A stretch of 27,802 nt of DNA. Source: Macrostomum lignano (lineage: Eukaryota). Of this stretch, positions 4,999 to 21,148 are shown one piece after another. The stretch spans positions 1 to 27,802 of the forward strand of contig NIVC01005049.1 of NCBI GenBank assembly GCA_002269645.1, written 5' to 3'. The notes under the pieces were generated by a model. It worked only from the letters and a program-made list of their open reading frames with translations, was not told where the DNA came from and ran no database searches. Numbering within the stretch: the first letter of the stretch is position 1; every line of letters starts with the position of its first letter. The position numbers were made by a program, and so were the translations under genes.

Positions 4999-5236
4999 TA
5001 TCAAATCTAGGACCTAGGTTACAGGCTAATTAAGATAATGCTCTAATTTCCTTTACTTATCTTAAAATTATAATTCGATTTTATAATCTGTACAAAAATC
5101 CAAAGACCTGGGCTTGCTTTTAATTTACATGCTTAAACAACCTTAAATGAAATCTTAAATTAAATCCCATTAATTGAATATCAACATACTCAATAGTTCA
5201 CCTGACGCATCTCTTCCCTGCTGGAAATGCTTCCAG

Positions 5237-5598
5237 GCGTCGGCAGATCCACAGTCCAGCAGACAGTCTGCTAAGTCGGCCAGGCCAATTAGGCCAAAGC
5301 AGAGGCGCTTTCAGAGGCCTACTAAGCCCATTGCTAATCCTTCTATCGATGTGCATCGCTCGCTGTCTGTTAGAGTCCCATCTAAGATACGGCCCTCTGG
5401 CTGGAAATCCTCTTAGCTGCCTGGCTGTTGGAGGCGGTCCAGCCTGCATTGCCGGCCTGGTCTGCGTTGCTTTTGCCGCTCTGAATGCGTCTGCTTTTGC
5501 CGCTTCTTCTGGCTATCGGAGGCTCGGAGTGGCCAGCAGTGCCTGTCTGCTTCTGGTGGCTCCCGCTTGCATTGTGCTGTGGTCTAGGCCTTCGCCCA
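5237..5598 (+). CDS. DGAT1: DGAT1-like exon 2
   Basis: ttccag|G ... CCC A|gtgagt; GRRQIHSPADSLLS..FRGLLSPLLILLSMCIARCLLESHLRYG resembles DGAT1 [37 protein letters not shown]. Confidence 0.85.
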
Positions 5599-5808
5599 GT
5601 GAGTATTTCCTATTATCTTTAAACTTGGGTTGAGTAGTGTGTTATGAGCAGCCTTGAATACCTTGATTTAAAGCTTTTTTGAAATACTTCTCTGTACCCT
5701 TAAAACCCTGGTGTGTTAATGTACCCCATATAAAACCCAGGTGTGTTAATGCACTCCATAAACTCAGGTGTAATATAACCCTCCGTCTCGCTATTCCCGC
5801 TTCAACAG

Positions 5809-6197
5809 TTGTCGGCTTCGCAGGAATATCAATCAGTGTGGCTCTGTTCCTCAAGCTGACCAATTTGCACCTGCAGCGTCAGCGCATTGCTAGGCAACTC
5901 GTTGAACTTCGGGTTGTCAGTGTCAACAGAATGCTACTAATTAGCTTTGCTCAACTAGCAGGACTATTAGTTGCTATAGTGGCTCTGACTCAACAGTGGT
6001 TAATGCCTTCTCTAGCTGCCGCCTCATCTGATCCAGCTGCTAATAGCTACGAGTACAATGCGCCCTGCTGGCTGGTGATGGTTGAGAGGCAACTGCGCCT
6101 GTCGCCTCCTGTTATTGCCGTCTGCTTGGCTGCAGGAGCGGCAATGGATCGGATTCTGAAACTGATGGATTGCTGCTTTCAGTCTGGCAGTGACTTT
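5809..6197 (+). CDS. DGAT1: DGAT1-like exon 3
   Basis: caacag|TT (phase 1, A+TT=Ile) ... GAC TTT|gtaagt; VALFLKL, LTQQWLMPSL and VERQLRLSPP resemble DGAT1 TILFLKL, LIQQWMVPTI and IERLLKLAVP. Confidence 0.85.
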
Positions 6198-6489
6198 GTA
6201 AGTGCTATTTCTTTATTTTTAGCTTTTCATTGTTCGTTTCTAAGTTTAGTGTAAGCTTTTAAGATTTTTAGGAATCACCCTTTGAAGTTATTTAGGAATC
6301 GCCCTTTGAAGTTATTTAGGAATCGTCTTTAAAAGTTGCTTGGGAAATGCCTTTCCATGCCAATCATTGTAACGCAAGAATTCCACAAAAAGAAACATAA
6401 GAAATCATTTTTCACCAAAAAAATATTTTCAGCAGCAGAAACCCTCAGCTGAGGACACTACTATCAGTAGCAAACTAACTCAAACCAAG

Positions 6490-6783
6490 CGACTCTGGTG
6501 GAATGCTTCAAGCCTGACCAACCTGCTGAAGTCTGTGTGGCCATCCGCAGCGGAATTCAATCTGCCTAGTCTAGCCTGGGCTCTCCTGGCCCAGCTGGTT
6601 GTGTCCGCAGTGCTTCGATCGCCCCAGCCGTGGCCTCTGCTCACTGTGGCCATCGTGCTGCCCATTCTGGATGCCGCCTGCGTCAGATTCGGCAACAATG
6701 CCTTCGTTTGGCTCTGCCTTGTGCTTGGCCTGCCAGTGCTAGCTAGACTGGGCTATGCTGACTACTGTCAGTACTATCTTTGA
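6490..6783 (+). CDS. DGAT1: DGAT1-like exon 4 (terminal)
   Basis: ctaac branch-like motif and aag|CGA acceptor (phase 0); joins to give DF|RLWWN (degenerate FYxDWWN); FGNNAFVWLCLVLGLPV..YADY resembles YGNAAVWLSLIIGQPI..VHDY; TGA 6781-6783. The AAG acceptor is the weakest site in the model. Confidence 0.8.
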   Translation, partial: RLWWNASSLTNLLKSVWPSAAEFNLPSLAWALLAQLVVSAVLRSPQPWPLLTVAIVLPILDAACVRFGNNAFVWLCLVLGLPVLARLGYADYCQYYL

Positions 6784-8616: not shown

Positions 8617-8641
8617 CTCATCTCCTTCCTCCCACCTCCAG
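8617..8641 (+). promoter_or_regulatory. 3' splice acceptor (probable SL trans-splice site) directly preceding SIRT6 codon 2
   Basis: ctcat branch-like motif + ctccttcctcccacctccag|TCG GCT AAC TAC; no ATG|GT donor between 6783 and 8641. Confidence 0.75.
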
Positions 8642-10012
8642 TCGGCTAACTACTCGGCCGGGCTGTCCGAATACTCGGACAAAGGCACTCTGGGCCTGCC
8701 CGAAACTCACGAGTCCCAAGCCGATTGGGAGTTGAAAGCTCGTCAGCTGGTGGACCTGATTCGACAGCCCGGAGCTCGAGTCGTTGTCCACACGGGAGCC
8801 GGCGTCAGCACCTCGGCCGGAATCCCGGATTTCCGCGGCCCCAACGGCGTCTGGACTCTAGAACGCGAAGGTCGAACAGTTGAAGCCGGGGCCAAGTTTG
8901 AAGAGGCTCAGCCAACACTTACTCACGCCGCTCTGGTTGCCTTGGAAACGGCCGGATTCGTTCACTACCTGGTGACGCAGAATGTTGACGGTTTGCACCT
9001 TCGGTCTGGATTTCCTCGCAATCGGTTGTCGATTTTGCATGGCGATATGTTTGTTGAGCGGTGCGCCCGGTGCGGCTTGCACCGGGCGAGAGACCAACCG
9101 GTGGAGACGGTCGGTCAGAAAGCCACCGGGAGGCGGTGCGGAGCTCCGGCTAGGCGAGGCAGAAAGAAATCCGTCAAAGCCGGTGGCGATGCTGGTGACA
9201 GTGTTGACGGCATCTGCGGCGGCCAGATGCTGGACACGGTGCTAGACTGGGAGCATCAGCTGCCTCAGGTAGATCTTCGTCGAGCTCGCGAGCATTCCAG
9301 TCGGGCTACCGTTAATCTGACTCTGGGCACCAGTTTGCAGATTGTTCCGGCCGCCGATCTGCCCACAATGGGCGGCAAATTAGTCATTATTAATCTGCAG
9401 CCTACAAAGAAAGATGCTCAGAGTTATCTGCGTATAAATGCTCGTTGCGATCTTGTCATGGCGTTGGTCTGTAGAGAACTGCTCGGCATTGATGCCGAAG
9501 AGATGCTGAGGCCGTTGCTTCGCCTGCAACCGTTGAGACTGTTTTCTAAGCATACGCGAAAGAGTGAACGGTTTCCATGGCGATTCGCCGAGTCTGATCA
9601 GAATCAAAAAATCGATAGAGAAGCTCAAAAAGAAGCTAAATGCGAGATTCCAAGTACAGAACGCACTTTGGAAAGTTCAAAATGCACTTCGGAAAGTGCA
9701 CATTGTACTTCGAAAAGTACAGAACGCACTTTGGAACGCATTTCTGAAAGTACAGAACGCACTTTGGAAAGTTCAAAATGCACTTCGGAAAGTGCACATT
9801 GTACTTCGGAAAGTACAGAGCGCACTTTGGAACGCATTTCTGAAAGTACAGAGCGCACTTTGGAAAGTGCTCAACGCACCTCGTCGGAGAGTTCAAATCA
9901 AAGTATCAAAATCAAAGATGAAGTTGTCACCGATATGAAAAAGAAACTTGAACATTCGAGCGCAGATGAGTCTAACTCTGCCACCGCGACTAAACGTTCA
10001 AAGCTTGCTTAG
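8642..10012 (+). CDS. SIRT6: NAD-dependent deacylase sirtuin-6, intronless; initiator Met not encoded in cis
   Basis: [21 protein letters not shown] matches the SIRT6 N-terminus (M)[45 protein letters not shown], catalytic LHG, four Zn Cys, LGTSLQI and INLQPT present; basic C-terminus KRSKLA. Confidence 0.95.
   Translation, partial: [456 protein letters not shown]
9653..9883 (+). repeat. Coding higher-order repeat in the SIRT6 tail: 96-bp period (starts 9653, 9749, 9845) built from 21-nt subunits
   Basis: [20 protein letters not shown](K/E)[11 protein letters not shown] x ~2.4; frame stays open. Confidence 0.9.
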
Positions 10013-12680: not shown

Positions 12681-12853
12681 CAACACGAACCTAAAACCCT
12701 ATGCGTCACAGACTCGCAGATGTAAGAATATCGTACGTCTTAGGTACTTCTTAGGTACTCGTGCTTCTACTCTCGTCGTACAGAGCACGCCTTATTCACC
12801 TGTAACCCATCCAACCCATTATCTCATGCCAGTCAAGCAGCTCCAACAGACAA

Positions 12854-14797
12854 ATGGCATCCCCAGTCAAGAGCAGCAGCATGCTGCAGTCCATGAAGTC
12901 GCTCGGTACTAAAGCCGCAGCCGCAGCTCTTGACTGGCTAGGCTCAAACGAAGCAACCAATATTCTCAACGATTCCACGGCATCCATGGAATTCGAACTT
13001 CGCCTTGCCGAACGAGTGCTTGCCTCGATTGATTGGTCTAACTATGCTGCCAGAAGTGCCACCGTCTGGACAAAGCATCAGCGTCCGTTGCCTAGCGACG
13101 CCAAGAGTCCAGCTCGCCTAGCGGAAGCTCGTTCGGCCGGTCTGGAAGCCCTCGACTGCGGCCTGCTGCGTTTAGCGGCGCTGCGATTTTCTGAATGCAT
13201 CCGGCACGCCCAGCCAGGTAGCTCGGATCTTGCCGTGGCTTTCGCCAACCGTTCGCTGGTGTTCAAACGTCTCGGTTGCTATGCGGAAGCCATAGCCGAT
13301 GCTGAAGCGGCTCTACGGTTGCCGTATGGCGACGAGCGGGCCGGTAAGCTGACAGGTCGCATCGCTGACTGTCAGAAGAGAATGTCAGTGTCGAAATCCT
13401 CAAGTGTTTCCCAGCCAGCAGCAGCATCTCAATCGTTGTTGCGGGATTTTAATCCCCAGCTGCCGCACGCCAGCGCCAAGGTGCAGCTCGCTCTGGCAGA
13501 CGAAAGTCGCGGTCGCTGTCTTCTTACTCTTGAAGACGTCGATGTTGGAGACCTGTTGGTCTCTGAGCCGGCTTTTAGCGCCATTCTGCTGTCAAATCTT
13601 CGCGATAGTCACTGCTCAGCCTGCTTGGCACCTTGCCAACGGTTGCTGCCCTGTAGCGACTGCTCAGTTGTTGGCTTCTGCTCGGAGACTTGTCGGGATA
13701 ACGACCCGGTCCACAGGGTGGAATGCGGATGGCTGGCTGGATGGCTGGACTCGGCATTCAATGCGAGCATTGGTCGGCTCGCTTTTGCCACCGTGATCGC
13801 CGCTGGCGGTCCGGTTTCCGTTGCTCAGGCTGTTGCTAAGGCGAAGAATTTCAAAGATTTCGAATCGGTTTTCGGATCTGCTGGCGATTATCAATCGGTG
13901 CTGGCTTTGGTAGCTGGAGAACGACAGCGAGAGAGTCGCGATTTGGCTCAGCGAGTCGCCGTTGCCTGCCAGATGGCTCTGCTGCTCAGTGTTGAGTCTG
14001 AGTCAAATTCTCAGCTAGATGTAGCCGCCCCACTTGTTGCAGCACTGCTGCGCCATCTGATGCTGGTGCCGTGCAATGCTCACGATGTAACTGCATTGTC
14101 CGCTCCGCCGAGTAGGCTGACTACTAGTAGTAGTACTGACAATGGCAGTTCGGTAGATATTTCTGCCCTGACTATCAGAGACATTGGGTCGGCTGTGTAT
14201 CCTACGGCCAGTTTAATTAATCATTCTTGCGATCCGAATGTATCGCGAGTCACTTGTCCCGGTTTGAGACTGGAGATTCGAGCTCTCCGACCGATTGCTA
14301 AAGGCGAGGAGCTCCTTGACAACTACGGTTGGCATTGGGCTGTGCATCCGAAACAGCAGCGCCAAGAAAGTCTTGCAGCTCAGTATTTGTTCGACTGCGA
14401 CTGTGTTGCTTGCACCAATGAGTGGCCACTGTATGATGGCTTGTTGGCGTTGGAGCCTAGATGGATTGATGCGATTGCTAAGGACGATAAGAGCGAAGTC
14501 GAGGGTGCCGATAAAAACAATTTAGACGATGTTGCCAATTTTGTTGTCGATCCAACAATCAAAGCCGAGGTGGAATCAACTGTCGGGGTTGTAGCCGAGT
14601 TCGTGTCCTCATTCTCCACTTCCGCGCCACTCTTAGCTAACGAGCTGAACTCGCGTTTCGAGGCCCGACTGTTGTCGCTAATCCGCCTGCTGCAGCGTCG
14701 TGTCAGACGGCCGCATCGGTGGTTTAACGACGCCGAAGAGTGCGTCAAGATGGTGTGGAGCGCGCGGGGCTGCTTGGACACCGGCGGGACTGACTGA
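12854..14797 (+). CDS. SMYD4: SET and MYND domain lysine methyltransferase with N-terminal TPR-like region (SMYD4-like), intronless
   Basis: AVAFANRSLVF TPR motif; ADESRGRCL SET-N; MYND CSAC..CSDC..FCSETC..HRVEC; YPTASLINHSCDPN; LDNYG; post-SET YLFDCDCVAC; 647 aa. Confidence 0.88.
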   Translation: MASPVKSSSMLQSMKSLGTKAAAAALDWLGSNEATNILNDSTASMEFELRLAERVLASIDWSNYAARSATVWTKHQRPLPSDAKSPARLAEARSAGLEALDCGLLRLAALRFSECIRHAQPGSSDLAVAFANRSLVFKRLGCYAEAIADAEAALRLPYGDERAGKLTGRIADCQKRMSVSKSSSVSQPAAASQSLLRDFNPQLPHASAKVQLALADESRGRCLLTLEDVDVGDLLVSEPAFSAILLSNLRDSHCSACLAPCQRLLPCSDCSVVGFCSETCRDNDPVHRVECGWLAGWLDSAFNASIGRLAFATVIAAGGPVSVAQAVAKAKNFKDFESVFGSAGDYQSVLALVAGERQRESRDLAQRVAVACQMALLLSVESESNSQLDVAAPLVAALLRHLMLVPCNAHDVTALSAPPSRLTTSSSTDNGSSVDISALTIRDIGSAVYPTASLINHSCDPNVSRVTCPGLRLEIRALRPIAKGEELLDNYGWHWAVHPKQQRQESLAAQYLFDCDCVACTNEWPLYDGLLALEPRWIDAIAKDDKSEVEGADKNNLDDVANFVVDPTIKAEVESTVGVVAEFVSSFSTSAPLLANELNSRFEARLLSLIRLLQRRVRRPHRWFNDAEECVKMVWSARGCLDTGGTD

Positions 14798-15025
14798 ATG
14801 CTGGTTGTGATGGATTGACAATCAACTTCTATGCCATCTGTGCGTTTTTAATGCCATCTCAGCTAAAAGAATTGTTATTTGCAATGTCAGTAGTCCCTGT
14901 TCTGGTATTTGCATGAAGTCTTTATCCTATCATATCAGTATTATTGTTTGCAGTGAAACAACAGGTGTATGTGCATCGAATTTTTTATGACGCTCTTTTT
15001 CTATATTTTAGCTTTGGAATAAGTC

Positions 15026-15031
15026 AATAAA
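15026..15031 (+). terminator. Candidate AATAAA poly(A) signal for SMYD4-like
   Basis: Canonical hexamer ~230 nt after the stop. Confidence 0.45.
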
Positions 15032-16067
15032 ATCAATATTGTGTGCTCCGTTTTTTGGCCAGATTTTTTAATTGCATGATTCATGACTTATTAATACTTA
15101 GTTGCGAAATTTTGACACCGACAACTGATTATTCACCTTTATTACTTATTATATATTGCTACTAATATTGTACATCATTATTTATTTAGTAAGCATTTTA
15201 CCCCTGTTTTACCATCACTTTTTCAGCTTTTTCTACCTGTTATGCTACAAATATTTGGCTCCAAAAGAATTTGTGCCTTCTCTTTAATCTGGTTTAAGCA
15301 TGAATGCAAACATATCGAATTTTTTTAAAAATCACTAAGGGAGAGTTTTAGCATCAGTTGTTTTGCAAGCAGTTTTTATGGATAAATTTTACCGTGTGTA
15401 TTAATTTGTTAATTAATATTTGCTATGCTAAATAATATAAATTTTCGCAGATTGTCCCGAAGCTAACAAAAGCTTCCGAGTTGTGCAACTTGTTGGCGAA
15501 TTCATTCATTAAATTTTATTTAAAAAACTGGCAGTATGATTAAAAAATTGTGTAATTCTGTAGCTTTTCTTCAAGCTCACAGCCAGCTACTGACGGAAAT
15601 TCACTGAAGGCACAGCACTCATACACAGTTTTAAGAAAACAACCTTGATCATTTCTATGCAATCCTTGAGCCAGGCTCTTGGCAATTCTTGGCCAACAAA
15701 ACCAGCTCATTAAGTAGAATGCATGCCAGACTTTTGTTTATTTTGTGTAGGGAAAATATCCAGTTAGTCTAATTTATAAACAGGGCGTTTTTAGCAGGTT
15801 TTTAATCTTGTAAACTTGTTGTTTTTGTTGGAGAAGCACTTAGTTTTGTTTCGGCTTGCAGTCCGCTAGGGTGTTCGTTTTCATTCCTTGCGTTAGCCTA
15901 AATATAGTTGATAAGGTTGACATTATAATCAAATAAAATTCAACTTTTCGACACCTCAAACACAGAATATGGGCTGCTTAAACTTTACCAATTTTTATGG
16001 AGTTAGTTCACAGACTATAATTCGGAATATTAGTCACGTTTATGAAACCTTTTGTGATCTATTGGGG

Positions 16068-16550
16068 ATTGTGAACTATTCAAGATTGTGAACTATTCTG
16101 AATTGTGAACTATTGTATTTTTGTGAACTATTAGGGATTGTGAACTATTCGGGATTGTGAACTATTGGGGATTGTGAACTATTCGGGATTGTGAACTATT
16201 TGGGATTGTGAACTATTAGGGATGGTGAACTATTTGGGTTTGTAAACTATTGGGGATTGTCAACTATTGGGGATTGTGAACTATTGGGGATTGTGAACTA
16301 TTGGGGATTGTGAATTATTGGGGATTGTGAACTATTGGGGATTGTGAACTATTGGGGATTGTGAACTATTGGGGATTGTGAACTATTGGGGATTGTCAAC
16401 TATTGGGGATTGTGAACTATTGGGGATTGTGAACTATTCGTGATTGTGAACTATTCGTGATTGTGAACTATTGGGGATTGTGAACATTGTGGTTGTGAAC
16501 TATTGGGGATTGTGAACATTGTGGTTGTGAACTATTGAGGATTTTAAAAA
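16068..16550. repeat. 17-bp minisatellite (CTATTGGGGATTGTGAA)n, ~28 copies
   Basis: Unit read directly. Confidence 0.95.
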
Positions 16551-17039
16551 ACTTTGAGATTGTAAAACTTCGGGAATATAAAGCGCCCCACTTAGAAAAT
16601 GTTTTCAAAATTCCTACTGCAATATCCGTGTGCTATCCAGAAATGTTGCAACGCTTCTGCGGGACAATGAAGGTCGAGAATTATCTAAAATCCATCGTAT
16701 TAACCTGCTAATCAGCAGTTCAGCTACGCCCCCGTATCGTTGAGCACACAAGTTTTATAAATTATAGTATCTGTCCACATTAGTAATAGCATTAACGCCT
16801 GTATACTTTATGCGTTTTGTTTGCCTTTCTCACTGTGCTGGTGTTCAACTTGCCAGTGGCTACTAATATTCATAGTAATAATTCTTAGTGCTGGAACTTG
16901 AAAGTCTACTAACAAAAAGATACTGGGGCCACAGCACTAGGCCTATGTGTTATATGCTTAAAGTCCTGAATTGATGGCAGCTTTTATATGGCTAGTGAGC
17001 TTTCTGGCTCTGTTGGGGTGTTGGCTTCTCCTACATGAG

Positions 17040-17790
17040 TTCCTTATCTATGCATCTGCCTTCTAACTCTCACTTTCTATCCTCCCTTCATCTCTTCGGT
17101 TTCTCTCATCCCTCCCTTCATTTCCCTTTCCCTATTTCTCCCTTCATCTCTACCTTTAACCTTTCCTCTCTTCATCCCTCGTCTATCTCATTTCTCCCTC
17201 ATCTCCTCTACCAATTTCTGCCTTCATCTATCCCAATCCCTCTCCTCATCTCTCCCTTCATCTCCTTCTCTCCATATTTCTCCCTTCATCTCCCCCCTCT
17301 CCCCATCTTTCCCTTTATCTCTCCCTCTCCTTATTTCTCCCTATTTCTCCCTGCATCTTCTCTCTTCATTTCTCCCTTCATCTTCCCCTTTCCCCATTTC
17401 TTACTCCATCTCTCCCTTTATCTCTTTCTGTAACCTTTTCTCCCACCATCCCTCGTATATCTCATTTCTCCCTTCATCTCTTCCTCCCCATCTCTCCCTT
17501 CATCTCTCCCTCCCTATTTCCACCATCTCCTCTCCCCATCTCTCCCTTCATCTCTCCCTCCCTATTTCCACCATCTCCTCTCCCCATTTCTCCCTTCATC
17601 TCTCCCTCTCCTCATTTCTCCCTATTTCTCCCTGCATCTTCCCCTTTTCCCATTTCTTACTTCATCTCTCCCTTCATCTCTTTCTGTAACCTTTTCTCCC
17701 ATCATCCCTTGTCTATCTCATTTCTCCCTTCATCTCTTCCTCCCCATTTCTCCCTTCAGCTCCCCATCCTCCATTTCTCCCTTAATCTTT
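17040..17790. repeat. Degenerate polypyrimidine repeat (TCTCCCTTCATCTC-like) with an internal ~256-bp offset duplication
   Basis: Almost G-free C/T-rich tract; tttctgtaaccttttctccc at 17425 and 17681. Confidence 0.85.
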
Positions 17791-17874
17791 TATTCCCTCA
17801 TACATATATCATCCTCAAGAAGGTTAAGCATCTGCGCCAAGTGCCACTCCAAAGCCCGAGTGTGTGTACAGGAT

Positions 17875-17914
17875 ATTAACTGGATTCGTCCCACCGCTTT
17901 CATCTCAACCGCAG
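17875..17914 (+). promoter_or_regulatory. 3' splice acceptor (probable SL trans-splice site) directly preceding PMVK codon 2
   Basis: ttaac branch-like motif ... ctttcatctcaaccgcag|TCG GCC TCA; in-frame TAA at 17825-17827 and no in-frame ATG between it and the kinase motif. Confidence 0.72.
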
Positions 17915-18289
17915 TCGGCCTCAAACTGCAGTCCCAAGCCTCGCCAGCTGCTGCTGATCTCCGGCAAGCGCAAATCCGGCAAAGATCACGTGACCTCTCG
18001 AATATTAGCCGCCGCGGCTGAGCGCAACTTTCCTGCCGCTTGTGTTCGGGTCAGCCAGCCGCTGAAGGCGGAGTACGCCAGGCTGCACAAACTCGATGCA
18101 GACCGACTGGCGGATTCCACAGAGTACAAGGAGGCCTTCAGGGCTGACATGATCGCCTGGGGTGAGCGGCTGCGAGCTGCCGATCCTGGCTGCTTCTGCC
18201 GGCTGGCGGTGCAGATGGCGCAACCGCCTGCTGACGGGCTCTGGGTGGTGTCAGATGTACGCAGGCCTACCGATATCCAATACTTTCTG
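17915..18289 (+). CDS. PMVK: Phosphomevalonate kinase (animal type), coding exon 1; initiator Met not encoded in cis
   Basis: [16 protein letters not shown] P-loop, YKEAFRADMIAWGE, ADPGCFCR, WVVSDVRRPTDIQYF; donor CTG|gtgagg, phase 0. Confidence 0.93.
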
Positions 18290-18384
18290 GTGAGGGTATT
18301 GTCCTGACTGACTGTTTTTGAGTGTGTCTACGGTTTCTAGGGTTTGCTTTTTTCCAAAGTAGCGATTCTTTTCTTTGTAGCTAA

Positions 18385-20030
18385 TGTTATACCCGGTTGC
18401 TAGGGTTATTCCCGGTTGCTCTGGCTATTCCCGGTTGCTAGGGTCATTCTTCTAAGTTTCTACGGCTATTCCCGGTTGCTAGGGTTATTCCCGGTTTCTA
18501 TGGCTATTTACGGTTGCTAGGGTCATTCTTCTAAGTTTCTACGGCTATTCCCGGTTGCTAGGGTTATTCCCGGTTGCTATGGCTATTTACGGTTGCTAGG
18601 GTCATTCTTCTAAGTTTCTACGGCTATTCCCGGTTGCTAGGGTTATTCCCGGTTGCTAGGGTTATACCCGGTTGCTAGGGTTATTCCCGGTTGCTCTGGC
18701 TATTCCCGGTTGCTAGGGTCATTCTTCTAAGTTTCTACGGCTATTCCCGGTTGCTAGGGTTATTCCCGGCTTCTATGGCTATTTACGGTTGCTAGGGTCA
18801 TTCTTCTAAGTTTCTACGGCTATTCCCGGTTGCTAGGGTTATTCCCGGTTGCTATGGCTATTCCCGGTTGCTAGGGTCATTCTTCTAAGTTTCTACGGCT
18901 ATTCCCGGTTGCTAGGGTTATTCCCGGTTTCTATGGCTATTTACGGTTGCTAGGGTCATTCTTCTAAGTTTCTACGGCTATTCCCGGTTGCTAGGGTTAT
19001 TCCCGGTTTCTATGGCTATTTACGGTTGCTAGGGTCATTCTTCTAAGTTTCTACGGCTATTCCCGGTTGCTAGGGTTATTCCCGGTTGCTATGGCTATTT
19101 ACGGTTGCTAGGGTCATTCTTCTAAGTTTCTACGGCTATTCCCGGTTGCTAGGGTTATTCCCGGTTGCTAGGGTTATACCCGGTTGCTAGGGTTATTCCC
19201 GGTTGCTCTGGCTATTCCCGGTTGCTAGGGTCATTCTTCTAAGTTTCTACGGCTATTCCCGGTTGCTAGGGTTATTCCCGGCTTCTATGGCTATTTACGG
19301 TTGCTAGGGTCATTCTTCTAAGTTTCTACGGCTATTCCCGGTTGCTAGGGTTATTCCCGGTTGCTATGGCTATTCCCGGTTGCTAGGGTCATTCTTCTAA
19401 GTTTCTACGGCTATTCCCGGTTGCTAGGGTTATTCCCGGTTTCTATGGCTATTTACGGTTGCTAGGGTTATTCCCGGTTTCTATGGCTATTTACGGTTAT
19501 TGGGATTATTCCCGGTTGCTAGGGTTATTCCCGGTCTCTATGGTTATTTACGGTTGTTGGGATTATTCCCGGTTGCTAGGGTTATTCCCGGTTTCTATGG
19601 CTATTTACGGTTGTTGGGATTATTCCCGGTTGCTAGGGTTATTCCCGGTTTCTATGGCTATTTACGGTTGCTAGGGTCATTCTCGGTTGCTAAGGTTATG
19701 CTAAGGTTATTCCCGGTTGCTAGGGTTATTCCCGGTTGCTAAGGTTATTCTCGGTTGCTAGGGTTATTCCTGGTTGCTGGGTTATTCTCGGTTGCTAAGG
19801 TTATTCCTGGTTGCTGGGTTATTCACGGTTGCTAGGGTTATTCCTGGTTACTAAGGTTATTCCCGGTTGCTAGGATTATTCCCGGTTGCTAAGGTTATTC
19901 CCGGTTGCTAGGGTTACTCCCAGTTGCTAGTGTATTTCCGGTTTGCTAGGGATATTCAGGGGTTGCTAGGGTTATTCCCAGTTGTTAGGATAATTCCTAG
20001 TTTCTAAGGATATTTTGATTGCTATAAGTC
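18385..20030. repeat. 19-bp minisatellite (GGTTGCTAGGGTTATTCCC)n with a 79-bp higher-order unit (22+19+19+19) and a 512-bp tandem duplication, in the PMVK intron (18290-20100)
   Basis: Unit read directly; 18441-18952 recurs at 18953-19464. Confidence 0.97.
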
Positions 20031-20100
20031 ATTTTCTTTACTAAAGTGATAATTAGAGCTTGTGAAGGATGACCTCAGTCTCCCTGATCTGTCACTCCAG

Positions 20101-20322
20101 TCCGCCTACCCAGGCCGGGTTCACCTGCTCCGCCTGCGGGCCTCTGACGAGACTCGAACCCGGCGCGGCTGGGCCTTCGTTCCCGGAGTTGACGATGCGG
20201 AGTCCGAGTGCGCACTGGACTCCTGGGAGCGGTGGGACTCGGAGTTGGATAATAGCGGCGGAGAGTGCGACAGTGAGATTGATCGATGGATTGATCTGCT
20301 TTTTGATAGATTGATTGTTTGA
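20101..20322 (+). CDS. PMVK: Phosphomevalonate kinase, coding exon 2 (terminal)
   Basis: ctccag|TCC phase 0; [20 protein letters not shown] matches PMVK [20 protein letters not shown]; TGA 20320-20322; 198 aa plus Met. Confidence 0.93.
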   Translation, partial: [73 protein letters not shown]

Positions 20323-20410: not shown

Positions 20411-21148
20411 AGTGAGAGTCAGGGAGAGAGAGAGGCCGGGTGAGAGTCAGATCGGTAGGGAAGGGTGAGAGTCAGGGAGAGACGAAAGGGCGAGAGTCAG
20501 GGAGAGAGAGAAGGGTGAGAGTCAGGGAGAGAGAGAAGGGTGAGAGTCAGGGAGAGACGAAAGGGCGAGAGTCAGGGAGAGAGAGAAGGGTGAGAGTCAG
20601 GGAGAGAGAAAAGGGTGAGAGTCAGGGAGAGAGAGAAGAGTGAGAGTCAGGGAGAGAGAAGGGTGAGAATCAGGGAGAGAGAGAAGGGTGAGAGACAGGG
20701 AGAGAGAGAAGGGTGAGAGTCAGCTCGGTAGGGAAGGGTGAGAGTCAGGGAGAGACTGACCCTGTGAGAGTCAGGGAGAGAGAGAAGGGTGAGAGACAGG
20801 GAGAGAGAGAAGGGTGAGAGTCAGCTCGGTAGGGAAGGGTGAGAGTCAGGGAGAGACTGACCCTGTGAGAGTCAGGGAGAGAGAGAAGGGTGAGAGTCAG
20901 GGAGAGAGAGAAGGGTGAGAGTCAGGGAGAGAGAGAAGGGTGAGAATCAGGGAGAGAGAGAGAGAAGGGTGAGAGTCAGGGAGAGAGAGAAGGGTGAGAG
21001 TCAGGTCGGTAGGGAAGAGTGAGAGTCAGGGAGAGACGAAAGGGTTAGAGTCAGGGAGAGATAGAAGGGTGAGAGTCAGGGAGAGAGAGAAGGGTGTGAG
21101 TCAGGGAGAGACGAAAGGGAGAGAGAGAAGGGTGAGAGTCAGGGAGAA
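20411..21148. repeat. 25-bp purine-rich minisatellite (GGGTGAGAGTCAGGGAGAGAGAGAA)n with 75- and 100-bp higher-order blocks
   Basis: Unit read directly; lies between the convergent PMVK and NECAB 3' ends. Confidence 0.95.

Follow-up and report, generated by a model that had tools for sequence, protein, structure and literature searches.

Spliced leader AUG as the very probable start codon of a phosphomevalonate kinase gene in the flatworm Macrostomum lignano

To our knowledge, every reported flatworm spliced leader (SL) ends in AUG. That this AUG acts as an initiator methionine in flatworms goes back to Cheng et al. (2006), whose work is represented here by the accounts given in PMC9851317 and PMC12582326, and for SmSirt7, a class IV sirtuin of Schistosoma mansoni, the initiating ATG has been assigned to the SL by RACE (PMC3772001). 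Near-cognate initiation has also been found in organisms that use SLs (PMC9851317). The SL of M. lignano is 35 nt long (CGGTCTCTTACTGCGAAGACTCAATTTATTGCATG; 3' end ...TTATTGCATG) and ends in TTGCATG, with the GTAAG donor of the SL RNA gene following immediately (PMC8629364), so that the terminal AUG assumed for this leader in an initial annotation of the DNA studied here agrees with the published sequence. The public annotation of this species (Mlig_3_7, assembly GCA_002269645.1) was produced with the TBONE pipeline, in which the leader is trimmed from SL-containing RNA-seq reads, the remainder is mapped, and transcriptional units are cut at the resulting peaks (PMC5730564). Multi-gene units of M. 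lignano have been described as containing repeat-filled spacers (PMC8629364).

Here we analyze a stretch of 27,802 nt of M. lignano DNA (contig NIVC01005049.1, positions 1 to 27,802; hereafter the window) that contains four co-oriented genes, encoding a 362-aa protein, a SIRT6-like protein, a SMYD-like protein, and a phosphomevalonate kinase (PMVK). The anatomy of the locus, the position of RNA-based gene model starts at acceptors, the published SL with its ATG/GTAAG donor, N-terminal homology, and a step in divergence between gene copies together make it very probable that PMVK lacks a genome-encoded start codon and that its AUG is supplied by the SL, trans-spliced at 17914/17915 (a slash marks a junction throughout). 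The features concerned are as follows.

5247-6783, + strand: fourth gene, 362 aa; public CDS directly after the acceptor ggcag/ATC
8639-10012, + strand: SIRT6-like gene; acceptor ctccag (CAG at 8639-8641), single-exon CDS at 8642-10012, 456 aa, SANYSAGLSEY...
12854-14797, + strand: SMYD-like gene (SET and zf-MYND), annotated as 'partial', 646 aa; genomic ATG at 12854, public CDS from 12857
16052-16543, + strand: 17-bp tandem array TTGTGAACTATTGGGGA, 29 copies, in the spacer between the SMYD-like gene and PMVK (TRF)
17040-17800, + strand: C/T-rich degenerate tandem repeats filling the outron up to near the acceptor; bounds set by eye, TRF arrays only at 17238-17681
17825-17827, + strand: upstream in-frame stop TAA, the same in all four copies
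17828-17914, + strand: pyrimidine-rich 3' end of the outron, up to the acceptor ccgcag; no ATG in any frame, includes GTG 17864
17915-18289, + strand: PMVK coding exon 1, 125 codons, with the P-loop, ending DIQYFL; donor CTG/GTGAGG
18290-20100, + strand: PMVK intron, nearly all of it a 19/79-bp tandem array (18386-20014); acceptor ctccag/TCC
20101-20322, + strand: PMVK coding exon 2, 73 codons and TGA

The PMVK frame is closed upstream by the TAA at 17825-17827, which is kept in all four genomic copies, and a sequence scan of 17701-17990 found no ATG in any frame, thus none between this stop and the P-loop. The earliest in-frame ATG lies at 18149, within the domain (ADMIAW). GTG 17864 is the sole in-frame near-cognate codon 5' of the acceptor, and three in-frame CTGs precede the P-loop, with in-frame CTGs at 17948-17954. 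The acceptor itself, ccgcag/TCG GCC (17909-17914/17915, its CAG at 17912-17914), is in phase 0, is common to all four assembled copies, and lies one position off the enriched SL-acceptor motif [T/C]TNCAG; in paralog L001 the same site reads CTGCAG. The initial annotation had described this stop, the missing ATG, the first methionine in DMIAW, and the phase-0 acceptor, and every PMVK coordinate it gave proved correct on re-checking.

An additional acceptor-like site, aaactgcag/ (17926-17932, with ctgcag/ at 17929-17931), lies 17 nt into PMVK exon 1 and fits the motif [T/C]TNCAG; an SL joined there would place its AUG out of frame with PMVK. The cis acceptor of exon 2, cag/TCCGCC (S-A; 20098-20106), resembles the two SL junctions cag/TCGGC(C/T), a likeness that we assume to be coincidence. 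Tandem arrays are found in the PMVK intron (18386-20014), in the upstream spacer (16052-16543 and 17238-17681), and in the 3' flank (20412-20900, 25-bp units).

The public PMVK CDS, PAA46112.1 (hypothetical protein BOX15_Mlig029511g4, 'partial', 198 aa, SASNCS...), corresponds to window positions 17915-20322 of NIVC01005049.1 in Mlig_3_7, and our two-exon reconstruction without methionine is identical to it. UniProt models of the M. lignano PMVK copies (P0002, P0123-P0125) likewise begin with SASNCS. Since the frame is stopped at 17825, a 5'-partial ORF from 17915 is possible only if the transcript model begins at 17913-17915. The junctions named in the initial annotation are accordingly matched by public models based on RNA-seq and SL reads, which start exactly at 17915 for PMVK and at 8642 for the SIRT6-like gene and are flagged 'partial', and we infer that SL reads are positioned at 17915. 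An annotation habit of dropping codon 1 was considered as a source of such methionine-less models and rejected, as the GAPDH entries of M. lignano are complete, with the initial methionine in place. An exact look-up of the 199-aa PMVK with its methionine in a collection of 15 billion proteins returned no match, and the members of its cluster came from genome annotation only, with 0 transcript assemblies.

Public models begin directly after an acceptor in at least three of the four co-oriented genes (the 362-aa gene, the SIRT6-like gene, and PMVK). For the 362-aa gene, the start is at ggcag/ATCCAC both in the window (5236-5262) and in copy L007; in copy L005 (6550-6567) it lies 13 nt downstream, at tccag/CA GAC, where the SL AUG is out of frame and opens a 5-codon uORF. 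A Pfam search of the ORFs of this gene (5331-5633, 5679-6254, and 6535-6783) gave no match. The SMYD-like model starts one codon past a conserved genomic ATG in good context (acaaATGg), so that its 5' end follows TG and not AG; the nearest AG acceptors, at 12847-12849 and 12830-12832, are 7 and 24 nt upstream. This start is a caveat on the use of model 5' ends as evidence for SL sites. It seems doubtful that donated (SL) and genome-encoded start codons stand side by side at this locus, with the ATG of the SMYD-like gene lying where the SL AUG lands. If the junction after TG were true, it would suggest either a non-AG trans-splice acceptor or evolutionary interconversion of donated and encoded start codons.

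Under the naming rule of the annotation, genes cut from one transcriptional unit carry a common name prefix. On each of two paralogous scaffolds, the SMYD-like gene and PMVK have a prefix in common (Mlig029511, g1/g2, and Mlig002561, g4/g5), which indicates that PMVK was modelled as the downstream gene of a multi-gene unit, with its 5' end set by trans-splicing. The spacer between the two genes measures 3.1 kb, of which approximately 1.25 kb is tandem repeats (the TRF 17-bp array plus the C/T-rich stretch bounded by eye), and it exceeds the repeat-adjusted threshold of 1 kb applied to M. lignano operons (PMC8629364) unless its repeat content is greater than the TRF call. For Mlig029511 and Mlig002561, no gene-level SL table was found in the supplements of either annotation paper on M. 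lignano.

As judged from its domain and P-loop, the product of the gene is an animal-type phosphomevalonate kinase (PF04275). The P-mevalo_kinase family is precomputed on the public protein, the P-loop (GKRKSGKD) is the same as that of human PMVK (PDB 3CH4), which is also of the animal type, and the alignment with the human enzyme spans residues 9-196 (E = 6e-48). A protein search with PMVK returned M. lignano entries at 97-100% identity. It had been proposed that a methionine supplied at the acceptor gives a leader of nearly human length; in line with this, the 3CH4 alignment begins at residue 9 in both proteins, and 17 residues precede the P-loop in the SL-AUG model, compared to a median of 15 (IQR 12-16) among 114 PMVK orthologs that start with methionine.

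Comparison of the window with paralog L001 reveals 10 differences in the 90 nt upstream of the acceptor (11%; as codons, 8 nonsynonymous and 1 synonymous change) versus 6 in the 375 nt of exon 1 (1.6%; 3 synonymous and 3 nonsynonymous codon changes; Fisher p = 1.4e-4), a step from which it follows that coding constraint starts at the PMVK acceptor. This bears on the possibility that PMVK is translated from a non-AUG codon, either GTG 17864, if the transcript escapes trans-splicing, or an in-frame CTG at 17948-17954 on the spliced mRNA. Near-cognate initiation in SL organisms (PMC9851317) provides a precedent, and suitable codons are in place, GTG 17864 being in frame and 3' of the stop and three in-frame CTGs lying before the P-loop. 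However, GTG 17864 is GCG in paralog L001, the 29 codons 5' of the acceptor evolve like non-coding DNA, and a start at the GTG would produce a leader of 33 residues, longer than in roughly nine of ten orthologs (90th percentile, 32.5). A start at a CTG would leave merely 3-5 residues ahead of the P-loop glycine, and on the spliced mRNA an AUG precedes the CTGs. We therefore consider a non-AUG start very unlikely and favour initiation at the SL AUG.

The strongest support for an SL-donated methionine is provided by the SIRT6-like gene. Its public CDS begins at 8642, directly after ctccag, its residue 1 aligns with residue 2 of human SIRT6 (several PDB entries), and its homology begins exactly at the acceptor. 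A start of the form M-S-x-N-Y-[AS]-x-G-L-S (MSxNY) is present at the same offset in 104 of 119 SIRT6 orthologs; given that the genome reads cag/TCG GCT AAC TAC (SANY; 8639-8660), the conserved Met1 falls on the acceptor CAG. The ortholog set came from a search for SL-carrying SIRT6 transcripts of a congener, in which none were found. The anatomy of the gene is the same in three copies. With public models starting at 17915 and 8642, and with MSxNY restored by a methionine at the acceptor, the claim that PMVK relies on an SL-donated methionine is supported.

The initial annotation had presented the two genes as ATG-less and as sharing cag/TCGGC. Both junctions stand, but 'ATG-less' does not hold strictly for the SIRT6-like gene, whose outron contains two in-frame ATGs (8510 and 8561) with no stop before the acceptor; starts there would add 27 or 44 unconserved residues. 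The shared string CAGTCGGC has exactly two matches in the window (8639 and 17912), and at least two were obtained in 4 of 100 shuffles; the other SL-type junctions in the window, cag/ATCCAC and (ATG)/GCATCC, do not contain TCGGC. As the identity goes only weakly beyond chance and the other junctions differ, we treat it as coincidence pending genome-wide data. Selection of AUG/UCGGC (M-S-A) as a context for initiation or N-terminal processing at SL-AUG starts would be a weaker variant of the doubtful reading in which donated and encoded start codons stand side by side.

The PMVK start codon could alternatively be supplied by a cis-spliced upstream exon ending in ATG and joined to 17914/17915. 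The candidate named for this in the initial annotation, ATGGTGAAC (ATG/GTGAAC; 16222-16230), is present in a variant unit of the 17-bp array and is the sole ATG/GT in the 3.1-kb interval 14798-17914. The 17-bp unit contains no other ATG, so the AUG at 16222 would come first, and unit variants are also found in paralogs L001 and L002. Against such an exon, the donor GTGAAC is weak, with no G at +5 and a T at -2, and it arises from a single T-to-G variant of the repeat unit that occurs once in the window, once in L002, and four times in L001; this variation in copy number is expected of a repeat polymorphism and not of an exon end that is conserved. The exon is also missing from the RNA-based public models, which are 5'-partial at 17915 and with it would be complete at 199 aa. 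Furthermore, the SIRT6-like gene has the same missing methionine, with no ATG/GT between 6784 and 8641 upstream of its CDS, so that a common SL explanation is more economical. A cis-spliced start exon is thus highly improbable, and donation of the AUG by the SL remains the preferred reading.

Gene duplication bears on a further explanation, that the missing ATG reflects a defective copy or misassembly at this locus, with functional PMVK lying elsewhere in the partly duplicated genome. M. lignano has many near-identical gene copies, and one PMVK copy, in L003 (1232-3457 of NIVC01001605.1), has two homopolymer deletions and a frameshift. However, the acceptor, the upstream TAA, and the lack of an ATG are common to all four assembled copies, three of the four retain an uninterrupted frame of 198 codons and differ little in exon 1, and the neighbouring SIRT6-like gene displays the same anatomy in three copies. 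We regard a defective locus as extremely improbable and retain the SL AUG as the start of PMVK. Agreement of the four copies in acceptor, TAA, and absence of ATG excludes local sequencing error, against which the initial annotation had also argued. The significance that it gave to the shared M-S-A and TCGGC was overstated.

The two L003 deletions are single-base losses in G runs (window equivalents approximately 18238-18245) and shift the frame to give a 139-aa PMVK model; this copy reflects either homopolymer assembly error or decay. Among the paralogs, the PMVK gene span ranges from 1215 to 2408 nt, with an approximately twofold variation in intron length.

Metagenome contigs were scanned with a 21-mer of the SL, and one genomic contig and five transcript contigs matched. 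The genomic contig (L012, Ga0302322_100095745, 625-664) is environmental and contains an SL RNA gene reading ...CGGTCTCTTACTGCGAAGACTCAATTTATTGCATG/GTAAGACACC..., that is TTGCATG/GTAAG, with a 35-nt leader identical to that of M. lignano. In the published SL and in this contig alike, AUG forms the end of the SL exon and is followed at once by the GU donor. Within the window, no match to the SL 35-mer was found with up to 3 mismatches, and the 13-nt 3' end of the SL had no match in the paralog loci; these scans rule out that the methionine comes from an SL gene close by or from a retroposed remnant of the SL. An Rfam scan of the window detected zero RNA families.

The five transcript contigs (L008-L011 and L013; Ga0316592) carry the SL at their 5' ends and come from a Macrostomum-like relative; a search gave 87% identity between its GAPDH and the M. 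lignano protein. They apparently encode VDAC-, IDH-, CNBP-, GAPDH-, and arginine-kinase-like proteins, the GAPDH being search-checked and the others assigned by N-terminal sequence. In each of the five, the frame opened by the SL AUG is a uORF of just 2-41 codons, and a separate AUG starts the main ORF; the 41-codon uORF, in the IDH-like transcript, overlaps the main start. It follows that the SL AUG is not generally the initiator, that initiation there is gene-specific, and that bypass must be frequent. The context of the SL AUG is poor, with U at -3 and U at +4. Frequent bypass is a caveat on the efficiency with which PMVK would be translated from the SL AUG.

In the mechanism that we propose, the PMVK pre-mRNA would probably be one part of a longer transcriptional unit, together with the SMYD-like gene upstream, and the 35-nt SL, whose last three bases are AUG, would be trans-spliced to the acceptor ccgcag/TCG at 17914/17915. 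The junction would read TTGCATG/TCGGCCTCAAAC, with the read starting at 17915. In the model mRNA (SL, exon 1, and exon 2), the SL AUG is at nt 33 and opens an ORF of 199 aa; the following AUG comes 184 nt later in another frame, and the next in-frame AUG corresponds to residue 80, with the P-loop lost. The SL AUG, 32 nt from the cap, would be the first AUG of the mature mRNA and the sole in-frame AUG before the P-loop. We infer that ribosomes initiate at this AUG, in which case residues 2-199 of PMVK would be encoded by the genome and Met1 by the SL RNA gene. The SIRT6-like gene, 9.3 kb upstream of PMVK, would have its start codon supplied likewise.

If so, the Met1-less 'partial' entries for M. 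lignano in GenBank and UniProt, PMVK and the SIRT6-like protein among them and probably many others, most likely represent complete proteins to which the SL AUG adds the first residue. The missing Met1 matters for completeness statistics, for comparison of ortholog N-termini, and for anyone designing transgenes or knock-ins in M. lignano; a construct consisting of promoter and first exon would have no start codon in the absence of trans-splicing.

With regard to described systems, the human PMVK gene carries its own start codon, unlike M. lignano PMVK, and the 8-10 N-terminal residues are unconserved between the two. The study of M. lignano trans-splicing (Ustyantsev and Berezikov 2021, PMC8629364; Wudarski et al. 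2017, PMC5730564) concerns the same organism, SL, annotation, and acceptor type, and describes co-oriented trans-spliced genes with repeat-filled spacers such as those around PMVK. The SL AUG is not analysed as a start codon in these two papers (a term search of PMC8629364 gave 0 occurrences of 'ATG' and 1, generic, of 'AUG'), and a systematic count of SL-AUG-dependent M. lignano genes was not found in the searchable literature. SmSirt7 has the same start anatomy as the SIRT6-like gene of the window, with the differences that one is a Sirt7 and the other a Sirt6 of another species, and that the anatomy is read from genomic sequence here. Flatworm mRNAs initiated at the SL AUG share with PMVK an SL ending in AUG, a phase-0 acceptor before codon 2, and no usable genomic AUG; M. 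lignano belongs to another order (the free-living Macrostomorpha) and has another SL sequence, and use of the AUG is deduced here. With a phase-0 acceptor in four copies, the SL AUG in frame, and no other AUG before the essential residues, PMVK matches these mRNAs in every feature that defines them at the sequence level. The novelty of an SL-donated methionine was overrated in the initial annotation: as flatworm SL-AUG initiation dates back to Cheng et al. (2006), PMVK is a new gene-level example of a known mechanism, a well-supported but ordinary case. With it, initiation dependent on the SL AUG would be known not only from parasitic flatworms but also from an early-branching, free-living one and for an enzyme of the mevalonate pathway, an extension that is expected rather than surprising.
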